Assembly: GCA_047495785.1 (NCBI GenBank)
Contig: JBLDXI010000097.1
Coordinates: 267-64,266 of the forward strand
Reading direction: 5' to 3'
DNA from: Lepidodermella squamata
Taxonomy: Eukaryota > Animalia > Gastrotricha
DNA: 64,000 nucleotides
The notes under the pieces were generated by a model, which saw only the letters and a list, made by a program, of their open reading frames with translations, was not told where the DNA came from and did not search any database. Below, piece by piece: positions 35,926-38,900 of this stretch; position 1 is the first letter of the stretch, and every line of letters begins with the position of its first letter. The translations under genes were made by a program, and so were the position numbers.

Positions 35926-38900
35926 TTTCGGAATTCTTCAAAATACAGCTGGGCTTTCTCAAATGCCAAGTCGAAGCTAAATTCCGTCATATCTCTCTGA
36001 CCCTGATATTTCATCACGGCCATTGCAGCCAGAATTATACTGACTTGATTGATAAAGTCTTTCTCCGACTTGTCCGAAAAAATAACACTAGCCGCTGCGA
36101 CTGCCGCGCGGCCCCACAGATCGTTCAAATGGCCCTTCCACTCGGCGTTCAACTCGCTGCCCGAACGGCCCTTGCCCTGACTGGCACGCAAGGGACCATC
36201 CTGGCGTCGCTCGTCCTGACTGGCACCCAAGCGACTGCTCGTTGACCCGCTATTGCTAATCCTCGACACATCCATCGACTCTGCCTCGGATTCCGACTCA
36301 GACTCGGCCTCGGCTTCGACCTGCTCAACTACTGGTGCCTTCTTGCCAGCCTCGGCGGCCTTCTTCGCTTTATTGCGTTTCCGCCTTCGCACGTTCTTCC
36401 GCTGGCTTCTGCTCAACTGCGGCTTCACTACTTGCTGACTCGAACCCTGGGCTGGCTTGCCCGCCCCCGACCCTTGTGCTTTGGGTCCTTCGGTGGTTGA
36501 CGAGGCCACCGGTTTCTCTACACGCTTTTCAGCGCGTTTTTCCGCCTCAGCCTTGGCCTTTGCCCTGATCGCCTCTGCTTCCGCTAACTGCCTTCTCTTG
36601 TCTCTCGCTAAACCATCTCTTACATACTGCACGTACGGACATCCGGCGTAGTTGGTGGTGTGTTTCTGCGTGCAGTTGCGACACCGCATCGCTTCACATA
36701 CTTTAGCCTTCGCCGCTTCGTCCGTCAGGCCTTGCTCAACGCAAGCCTTTTTCGCAATTACCACCGGGCAAGCTTCGTCGCCCCTGAAGTGCTCACCGCT
36801 ACAATCGGGACAGGTTATCGTCTGGCTACATGCCGTCCAGGAGTGGCCACTACCCTGGCACCGCTGGCAAATTTTCACTTGCGGGCTATAGTCTTTGACT
36901 TGCTGCACTCTGCTCGTCAACGCAAAGAAGCCGATATAACCATTTCTCAGTTGGGCGTCCGCTTCGTCCTTAGTTTTGAACTCAATAAGGTACGTGCTGT
37001 AGCCAGGCCTACCCTGCTTCAGCTTCACCACAAAAACTGCTCCAAAATTCTCCTTATAGTACTTTACTACATCCTCAGCAGGCGCCGACGACGGTATGTC
37101 GATGGCTTTCACCTTGCGTTCCTCAAGCTTGAAGTCCGCTTGAACTTTCGGTTTTTCACCAGATAAAGCCGCCGGAGGATGGGCGTTCGCGTTTGCCCCG
37201 AATGCCGGCCTTGACGGGTCTTTCCATGACGGGCTTTCGTAAAATGCTTTCATTGAGGCCTCGTCGGCAAAAACAATCTGCCATCCGCCTTTCGGTTTCG
37301 GCAGCATCTTCACAACCCTGGCGCTCGGTGCTATCCTGTGAACTTCTTGATTCATCAAATACTCGCTATTGAATCGTTGGCCATCGATTCGATCAACCAT
37401 GGCGCTCAACTTCCAATTAATCGTCGGTTTGCCTCGCCAGTTGCCTGGTTTAGCGCCGCCCTGGTTCGCCGTCTGAACCGGTGGCTGTCGACGATTCTTC
37501 GCCGTCACAGTGATGAATTCTCCTTGACCATCTTGGCTACCTCGGCTATCTTCCTCTACTATCTTCTGCTCTTTTCCTCTCGCCACCGGCTTCCTCGTCA
37601 CAGTCTGCCTCTCGGCCGCCGGTTTCGCACCATCAGTCTTCAAAAACTTCGCTGCGGTCATGTCTGACGCGGAAACCGAGGATTCCATGCCAGTAAAGTC
37701 GGGCGCGTTACTAAGATTAACAAACATGCCATCATCACCGGCACGTCGCTTTCGCTCACTGGTCGCGCCTTTCGCCGAGCTTTGATCCATCGGCGTGTCT
37801 TCACCAGCCGTCAAATCTTGCGTCATTTCCATAACTTCACCTTGGTCTAGTGGCCGCTCGACAGTCTCACCAGCGCCTTCACCTTCCCATGCTGCTCGAA
37901 TTCTCTCCTCTTCTGCTCTTTGTCTCTCTTCGTTCTCATCTCGTCCGGCACCACCGCGCAACCGAAGAACCTCGAACAAATTCGACCTTTCTACGGACTC
38001 GCTACGCCTGACTTTATCCCTTAGATCAATTTTGCTATCGTTTTTGTCATTTTTCACGTGATTTTTTACAAGTTCGCGTTCACCTGGGTGAACAACAAAC
38101 AGGAAACAAAAATGGCCGAGCGACATGACCATATCACAAACCACATCACACACAACCGTCAAAAATCGACTCCTTACAACAGCGGTCGCGAGAAGCGCCG
38201 CACCACTGAGGAAAACAACAGTGCATACCATCTTCCATAAAATCGCTCTAGCAGCGCTATCAAGTATACCCGCGCTGTACTGCGGGGCGTAAAAGCAGCT
38301 CAAAATAGAGAGAAATTCATGAGAGAATGCTAAGTCGCGGGAAATGCATCGTCCGCTAGGAGCGGTTTCTACTACTGTCGCCGCAGAAGGCTTCGGCAGT
38401 AACGACGGTCCCGAACACACCGAGCCAACAATGTCTAAGTCAACACTATCAATTCCGCTAGGAGCGGTTACTACTAGAGCCGCCGCAGAAGGCTTCGGCA
38501 GTAACGGCAATCTAACAAAAGCGTCACCGTTCATCAAAGCAGAAGGCCCTGATGAACGAGCAAAATCAAAAGCAACTATCACACTATCGGACCGCGTTCC
38601 GCTAGGAGCGGTTACTACAACTGTCGCCGCAGAAGGCTTCGGCAGTAACGACGGTCCCGAGCACACCGAGCCAACAATGTCTAAGTCAACACTATCAATT
38701 TCGCTAGGAGCGGTTACTACTAGAGCCGCCGCAGAAGGCTTCGGCAGTAACGGCAATCTAACAAAAGCGTCACCGTTCATCAGAGCAGAAGGACCTGATG
38801 AACGGGCAAAATCAAAAGCAAATTCGGATCCACAAAGCCCAAAATAAATCCCGACTATCCCGCTAACTAATAAGAAAGTTAAGGAAAACTCGGTTTTAAG

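Follow-up and report, generated by a model that had tools for sequence, protein, structure and literature searches.

The C-terminal tail of ubiquitin, VLRLRGG, is encoded within the first open reading frame (ORF1) of a long interspersed nuclear element (LINE), a non-long terminal repeat (non-LTR) retrotransposon located in the ribosomal DNA (rDNA) of the gastrotrich Lepidodermella squamata. The element is present in two copies in the window, by which we mean the whole stretch of DNA that was analysed, i.e. 64,000 nucleotides (nt) of contig JBLDXI010000097.1; coordinates are window positions unless preceded by a contig handle. As the heptapeptide is invariant in eight ORF1 lineages that are only 24-33% identical, the sequence comparison excludes a chance match in ORF1, and it indicates that the conserved unit is the tail itself rather than the leader that precedes it. 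We tentatively favour, with a little less than even confidence, the reading that the motif is a processing site, at which a host protease of the deubiquitinase (DUB) type, specific for the ubiquitin tail, would cut the ORF1 product after Gly-Gly. The broader proposal, that a foldless ten-residue ubiquitin tail serves as a universal 'cut here' signal across this LINE clade and is read by host DUBs, is held slightly more loosely still.

The minus-strand frame 35910-40748 translates to ...SNLFEVLRLRGGAGRDENEE..., in which the motif occupies residues 927-933 of the translated track, or residues 900-906 when counted from the first ATG (40667). An earlier note on this DNA, made from the sequence alone, had reported the motif in ORF1 of both copies of the element, and both translation and a whole-genome pattern search for the motif-coding string agree with it: an identical 20-nt coding string is found at C97:38217-38236 and C97:55652-55671, corresponding to window positions 37951-37970 and 55386-55405. 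The second copy, however, is 5'-truncated and retains only about 270-314 leader codons instead of the full leader. The placement of the motif at a domain boundary was also described correctly, the 899 codons upstream being hydrophobic and repeat-rich, and the 679 amino acids (aa) downstream containing two RRM-like folds and three CCHC zinc knuckles. VLRLRGG equals ubiquitin residues 70-76, and a conserved Leu three residues upstream, which matches Leu67 of the host ubiquitin, extends it to an L-x-x-VLRLRGG block that stands directly before the next polypeptide, as the tail does in ubiquitin fusions. From the composition of this ORF1, 1.4e-5 occurrences of VLRLRGG would be expected. The polyubiquitin and Ub-L40 genes of the host (L037, L038 and L044) end in the same heptapeptide, and since normal ubiquitin precursor genes with this tail are present, the host should possess the enzymes that process them. 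The ubiquitin encoded by L038 and L044 (on C19) deviates at D24, S25 and Q28 from what we take to be the sequence invariant among animals, which is presumably unusual for a bilaterian.

The genome holds 74 matches to the element, of which 30 loci were read, and the element family carries the identical coding string at all of its approximately 36 motif sites. A second LINE family (L036 and two further sites) encodes an ORF1 with ...LHQVLRLRGGG... after a leader of about 140 aa; the two ORF1s share 27% of residues in the RRM-CCHC body (E 5e-23) and, outside it, only L-x-x-VLRLRGG. A profile built from the ORF1s of both families was searched against 1.84 billion representative proteins and returned 251 relatives, and the exact heptapeptide was found before the body in six of the 22 best of these (P0003, P0004, P0007, P0008, P0010 and P0015), with leaders of 13-151 aa, that of P0007 being the 13-aa one. 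Five of the six (all except P0004) come from at least three other samples. P0003, P0007, P0008 and P0010 were read on their contigs, where a second ORF follows each, with Pfam matches to an APE endonuclease and a reverse transcriptase (RT) for P0003 and P0007. The exact conservation in a second family and in six public lineages thus answers in the affirmative the test in homologues on which the earlier note had made its proposal depend. In the alignment of all eight carrier lineages (A2), L-x-x-V-L-R-L-R-G-G, including the Leu at -3 in every lineage, is the sole run of invariant columns; the remaining invariant columns are scattered Cys, His and Gly residues of the folded body, and the flanks of the motif are unalignable. 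As the motif codons differ between lineages at nearly every synonymous site (e.g. GTT CTT CGG TTG CGC, GTG CTG CGT TTG CGT and GTC TTA CGT CTT CGT), the selection evident in these alignments is on the motif peptide and not on the RNA.

The less conserved positions of the block are informative as well. The residue that corresponds to ubiquitin position 66 is Asn in five of the eight lineages, where ubiquitin has Thr (the others have Val, Ser or Asp); His68 is kept in four of the eight, and position 69, which is buried in ubiquitin, is free. Because Asn66 is common to five lineages against Thr in ubiquitin, the pattern suggests a single old origin, with selection only on the residues that are exposed in the ubiquitin tail. 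It has to be considered whether the motif could instead be a functionless relic, such as a fragment of captured ubiquitin mRNA that hitch-hikes in the element, or a matter of chance. LINE reverse transcriptases can capture host RNA at 5' ends, and the heptapeptide recurs in another protein of this genome; yet invariance in eight lineages of 24-33% identity with saturated synonymous change, together with the shared Asn66, which points to one old origin kept by selection, renders such a relic extremely improbable. The other protein in question belongs to a Helitron-like family (L032, L034, L035 and L056, on C4, C9, C11 and C32) with the exact VLRLRGG in ...KCRDIVLRLRGGPLSRINE...; it lies inside a seemingly conserved N-terminal domain, and seems to be coincidental, with no relation to the LINE motif. 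A further VLRLRGG-coding site, GTTTTGCGGTTGCGTGGAGG, is found at C55:172301-172320 (-), and could belong to a third LINE family.

A tree of the body places the eight carriers in a single clade of 18 members, where they form four to five sub-lineages mixed with non-carriers, and none is found in the sister group of 10 members. P0001, the nearest relative of the element at 40% identity, lacks both leader and motif, and a stop codon stands before its initial Met. The patchy pattern so indicates one gain followed by several losses, or transfer between lineages. P0041, with MLLRGG at its first Met, was judged too weak to be counted as a variant of the motif. No relatives were found in Joint Genome Institute (JGI) metagenome contigs scanned with alignment A4, and a word-index protein search with ORF1 residues 850-1612 and A2 gave nothing useful, as low-complexity words swamped the index.

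Only the tail of ubiquitin is present, which is in line with the earlier caveat that no ubiquitin fold is evident upstream. No ubiquitin match was found by Pfam at E<=10 in the 100 aa before the motif, in the E3 leader or in the whole leader, nor by a sequence search of the PDB with the 67 aa upstream plus the motif; a single-sequence model of the 137 aa upstream of the motif is all-helical, with low confidence; and the beta-grasp fold of ~70 residues that precedes the tail in ubiquitin fusions is absent, the leader of P0007 being far too short for one. In an AlphaFold model based on a 26-sequence alignment, the motif lies in a disordered stretch (model confidence score, pLDDT, 36-45); after a short acidic helix and a further 150 or so disordered residues comes a body modelled with confidence (pLDDT 84-98 over residues 212-510), which matches tandem-RRM proteins in the PDB (Foldseek, E 3e-6, probability 1.0) and is itself followed by the CCHC knuckles. 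Docking of the motif on the RRM body was considered and rejected, as the motif is disordered in this model and not packed on the body. These results also bear on a function that has nothing to do with ubiquitin, the likeness being coincidental, e.g. RGG-type RNA binding or arginine methylation, a localisation signal, or a contact in ORF1p self-assembly. ORF1p is an RNA-binding, multimerising protein, and R-x-R-G-G resembles RGG boxes. On the other hand, RGG boxes are repetitive and tolerant of change, whereas here one copy is invariant at exactly the eight positions that equal ubiquitin 67 and 70-76, His68 is kept in half of the lineages, and no contact with the folded body is seen in the model; we therefore regard such a function as quite unlikely.

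Several lines of evidence argue that the leader is translated. There are no stop codons in its 899 codons, compared with a mean of 40 (minimum 21) in shuffled sequences and 16-67 in the other five frames, and its start codon is the first AUG of the element. In none of the 30 loci read is the frame before the motif interrupted, despite divergence of up to 5% and a variable number of repeats; the length of the stretch before the motif is about 310 aa at the lower end, in 5'-truncated copies, and 1,228 aa at the upper (855-1,228 aa where the 5' region is kept), and all indels among nine aligned copies are in frame. Between subfamilies, the ratio of nonsynonymous to synonymous substitution rates (dN/dS) of the leader is 0.40-0.93 (p = 6e-6 for the most diverged pair), and it falls to 0.19-0.28 (p = 0.002-0.006) in the last ~140 aa before the motif, compared with 0.23-0.33 for the Gag part and 0.11 for RRM-CCHC. 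From these sequence features we conclude that the leader is translated, and that most of it is under weak constraint beyond staying open.

The alternative, in which the leader is untranslated and Gag starts at a downstream Met such as MEMTQD, the motif then lying in a long open 5' untranslated region (UTR), draws on the odd composition of the leader (T-rich third positions) and its tandem repeats, on the weak constraint in places (dN/dS of about 1 between close copies in one segment), and on the fact that the organism trans-splices, so that an internal acceptor could in principle remove the leader. It is at variance with the complete lack of stops where 40 are expected, with the frame kept open throughout, with dN/dS below 1 overall and at 0.19-0.28 just before the motif, and with the absence of an upstream ATG; the candidate internal Met is not kept between subfamilies (MEM, MDM or RDM), and conservation of the motif as a peptide across lineages would make no sense in a UTR. 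In run X1, contigs extend over the motif (36655-38235) and over leader plus 5' UTR (39016-40805), and no joint that would remove the leader was seen among them, which is weak evidence as these are contigs only. Taken together, a downstream start, which the earlier note had named as a way for its proposal to fail, is disfavoured, and we regard it as very improbable.

The leader itself has about eight transmembrane-like segments by the Kyte-Doolittle scale. Its third codon positions are T-rich (35% T), in contrast to the G-rich ones of Gag and ORF2 (36-38% G), and because of this difference in composition a separate origin of the leader is possible; the data suggest a separately acquired, fast-evolving module. 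It holds three CCLACCLACCLADGF-type Cys-rich repeats, and its 74-aa tandem repeats vary in number between copies, L011 having an in-frame duplication of ~300 aa. An origin of the leader by insertion, with GAGRDE duplicated on both sides, was rejected, as the two GAGRDE peptides have no similarity at the DNA level. On the + strand, the leader is overlapped by two antisense ORFs, of 167 aa (38344-38847) and 218 aa (38917-39573), which probably result from its composition, as the antisense frame contains only 16 stops.

According to the processing model, ORF1 is translated from its first AUG into a polyprotein in the order leader, L-x-x-VLRLRGG and Gag with tandem RRM and three CCHC knuckles. As a short linear motif in a disordered stretch, the ubiquitin mimic is under strong selection at the protein level across a clade of LINE ORF1s, and the leader before it varies freely in both length and sequence. 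A host cysteine protease of the deubiquitinase type that recognises the ubiquitin tail would then cut after Gly-Gly; the Gag so released would be of ordinary size and begin with a small residue, and the leader would be discarded or separately deployed. Pfam finds no protease domain in ORF1 or ORF2, as the earlier note had also stated. The sequence after GG fits this model in several respects. Its 679 aa include 183 aa before the RRM body, compared with 41-210 aa before the body in leaderless relatives, so that by sequence comparison the part after GG appears to equal the whole ORF1p of these relatives in size, and its N-terminal character, a small residue followed by polar or basic low complexity, resembles their N-termini; the earlier suggestion that this region is an ordinary-size ORF1p is hence well founded. 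In the eight lineages, GG is followed by A, G, G, G, S, S, A or M, but by Pro in none of them; ubiquitin fusions with Pro right after GG resist DUBs. The further suggestion that cleavage releases Gag from a membrane-bound leader may fit this family, given its transmembrane-like segments; it cannot be the general role, because the leaders of the other seven lineages are 13-151 aa long, non-hydrophobic and unalignable.

Several points weigh against cleavage by a DUB. No cleavage product has been observed; the RNA data of run X1, being contigs only, cannot show where translation starts; the motif is dispensable in some lineages, as the nearest relative P0001 shows; the heptapeptide is also found in the Helitron-like protein; and there is no ubiquitin fold, Pfam and PDB searches being blank, the model all-helical and the leader of one lineage only 13 aa. 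This last point matters since the body of ubiquitin is the exosite on which DUBs depend, and their hydrolysis of bare LRGG peptides is very poor (PMC7477763), a difficulty that the earlier note had foreseen and that is the reason why our confidence in cleavage stays just under even. The same fact suits a binder better than a substrate, for bare tails do bind in DUB clefts (PMC7477763). The tail mimic might thus remain uncut and serve as a docking or pseudo-substrate motif in the tail-binding cleft of an enzyme of the ubiquitin system: it might recruit a deubiquitinase to the ORF1p-RNA particle, shielding it from ubiquitin-dependent degradation, or act as a local inhibitor. All the evidence for conservation applies equally to docking, the motif is modelled as an exposed linear peptide, and a leader of 13 aa as in P0007 would hardly be worth removing. 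Docking gives no reason, however, for the motif always dividing a freely evolving leader from a standard-size Gag, for leaderless relatives beginning close to its expected place, or for the small residue, never Pro, after GG; we consider docking rather unlikely.

Cleavage could also be due to a protease other than a DUB, either an Arg-specific enzyme of the metacaspase or paracaspase type, or a papain-like LXGG protease that another element or a virus provides in trans. L-R-L-R/G has the hydrophobic P4, Arg P1 and Gly P1' of the Arg-specific pattern, and resembles known paracaspase sites; viral LXGG proteases cut bare peptides well; and the element has no protease domain of its own. A site of four to five residues, however, needs no ten-residue match to ubiquitin 67-76 that includes Val70, Leu71 and both Gly residues, and no partner protease has been identified. 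We give this explanation a low probability, marginally below that of a function unrelated to ubiquitin.

Among the separators that are known in mobile genomes, 2A or 2A-like 'StopGo' peptides, which sit N-terminally in the ORFs of the LINEs L1Tc, Ingi, Rex1, L2, CR1 and Crack (PMC3708506, PMC3894237), offer the closest parallel. Like 2A, the LINE motif is short (about 10-30 aa for either of them), conserved and linear, lies near the N-terminus, and parts a variable upstream peptide from the functional protein; its occurrence in some members of a clade and not in their close relatives parallels the patchy distribution described for 2A within LINE clades (PMC3708506), and both parallel a strategy of viruses. 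Unlike the LINE motif, 2A ends in D-x-E-x-NPG/P and acts on the ribosome without a protease, whereas a ubiquitin tail implies a post- or co-translational protease or a binding role. Furthermore, the motif sits in an ORF1 of the RRM+CCHC (I/Jockey/R1-like) group, which has not been reported to carry 2A, and neither NPGP nor x-E-x-NPG was found in 150 ORF1 relatives or in ORF1 of the element. Cytopathogenic pestiviruses such as bovine viral diarrhoea virus (BVDV) carry ubiquitin or ubiquitin-like inserts that are processed by host enzymes (PMC13517609 and references 16 and 54 therein). There, too, an RNA-based mobile genome without a suitable protease depends on the host and puts ...LRLRGG directly before the protein that is to be set free; but the pestivirus inserts are one or two whole ubiquitins, sometimes with extra fragments, and are recent, sporadic captures (PMC13517609), while the LINE motif comprises only residues 67-76, has no fold, and is ancient and clade-wide. 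The polyubiquitin and Ub-L40 genes of the same genome likewise have the identical C-terminal heptapeptide directly before the next polypeptide, behind a full 76-residue fold, whereas the LINE motif has Asn, Val, Ser or Asp in place of Thr66 and a variable position 69, part of the buried core in ubiquitin. Foldless ...L-R-G-G/ peptides are used as polyprotein junctions by viral papain-like proteases (coronavirus PLpro and others), the genomes of which encode their own protease; the element encodes only RRM/CCHC, APE and RT domains. Cleavage after GG would make the LINE motif the protease-dependent equivalent of a 2A separator and an equivalent, lacking a fold, of the ubiquitin inserts in pestiviruses.

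How LINE proteins are produced from odd transcripts, which may be co-transcribed with host genes, uncapped or trans-spliced, and may have long open leaders, is poorly understood, and to our knowledge 2A peptides are the only N-terminal separator described in LINEs. If our reading is correct, the conserved ubiquitin tail would join 2A as a second separator, one that depends on the host, and the element would be the first retrotransposon found to borrow the processing route of ubiquitin precursors; a full-text search, the coverage of which was incomplete and is no proof of novelty, turned up no description of such a tail in any retrotransposon protein. Any upstream frame could then be translated through and its product shed, whether a peptide of 13 aa, a leader of 150 aa or a membrane-like one of 900 aa. 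Some cellular DUB would have to cut linear ubiquitin-tail motifs efficiently in vivo, against the view that DUBs need the ubiquitin body, and shed leaders ending in -RLRGG-COOH would exist in cells as free ubiquitin-tail ends, possibly as C-degrons or as ligands of ZnF-UBP domains. If the mechanism works, a motif of 10-12 residues could offer a small tool for co-expression that, in contrast to 2A, depends on a protease.

Tandem rDNA repeats with a unit of 8,460 bp make up the window; in each unit the 18S, 5.8S and 28S genes lie on the + strand and the 5S gene on the - strand within the spacer. Self-BLAST showed one non-LTR retrotransposon in two copies, both on the minus strand and in the rDNA spacer (Table 1).

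Table 1. Position of the two element copies, their coding regions and the ubiquitin-tail motif in the window
Feature	Position	Strand	Basis
Copy 1, full length	32822-40832	-	self-BLAST, junction reading
3' UTR and short A-rich tail, copy 1	32822..33138	-	junction read
ORF2, APE endonuclease and reverse transcriptase, 928 aa	33139..35925	-	Pfam PF03372, PF14529, PF00078
Gag-like ORF1 part, 679 aa and stop	35910..37949	-	AlphaFold model, Foldseek, invariant Cys/His columns
VLRLRGG, copy 1 ORF1	37950..37970	-	translation, genome pattern match; identical in 30/30 genomic copies
ORF1 leader, 899 codons from first ATG (40667) to motif; hydrophobic, repeat-rich, Cys-rich	37971..40667	-	translation
5' UTR of full-length copy, 165 nt, no ATG	40668..40832	-	sequence, junctions
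Copy 2, 5'-truncated, 13-bp target-site duplication on both sides	50257..56334	-	self-BLAST, junctions
VLRLRGG, copy 2 ORF1	55385..55405	-	genome pattern match

The Gag-like part is ordered as acidic helix, disordered linker, tandem RRM-like domains, three CCHC knuckles and helical tail, and its body is that of a LINE ORF1p of the RRM + CCHC type. With an ORF2 of APE and RT domains, a 13-bp target-site duplication and an A-rich 3' end, and with the same layout on contigs L063 and L064, the element is an I/Jockey/R1-type LINE, as placed by domains and layout. A feature search found ORF2 to be arthropod/echinoderm-like. The ATG of ORF2 lies 16 nt upstream of the ORF1 stop (35910-35925, -: AAAATGCCAAAAGCAGTAA), and because of this overlap ORF2 is probably reached by termination-reinitiation or a similar coupling.

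The element is inserted between GAGG and TTAGTATCATCAC, the latter being the 13-bp target-site duplication, which adjoins the 3' end of copy 1 at 32821-32809. An internal deletion in copy 2 was rejected in favour of 5' truncation, as its apparent 5' 47 nt are target flank. Where copy 2 shows the 13-bp duplication, copy 1 is bracketed by a 958-bp direct duplication of the rDNA spacer that includes the 5S gene (31864-32821 and 40840-41796), its 5' end apparently having been joined at a distant break. The upstream flank of the insertion ends in ...TTTTCTGAG, followed by GT, and the full-length element matches the target sequence exactly over its first ~54 nt. Since many run X1 contigs join the flank at 40800 to unrelated sequences with an early ATG, the target looks like a spliced-leader (SL) RNA gene in the rDNA spacer, and run X1 like RNA; the junctions of SL to mRNA are loose ends at 40792-40800 in run X1, with the end of the SL exon at 40800. 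The target exon, ...AAATTTTCTGAG followed by GTTAGT, lies at 40798-40832 (-), and empty sites are found near 8241, 16701 and 24361. The element inserts 1-2 nt past the splice donor, which, together with the repetition of ~54 nt of the target at its own 5' end, suggests that it is transcribed from the SL gene promoter. An old diverged copy lies at C2:1156525-1158140, and E3 and L061 share a 5'-UTR block of only 21/28 nt.

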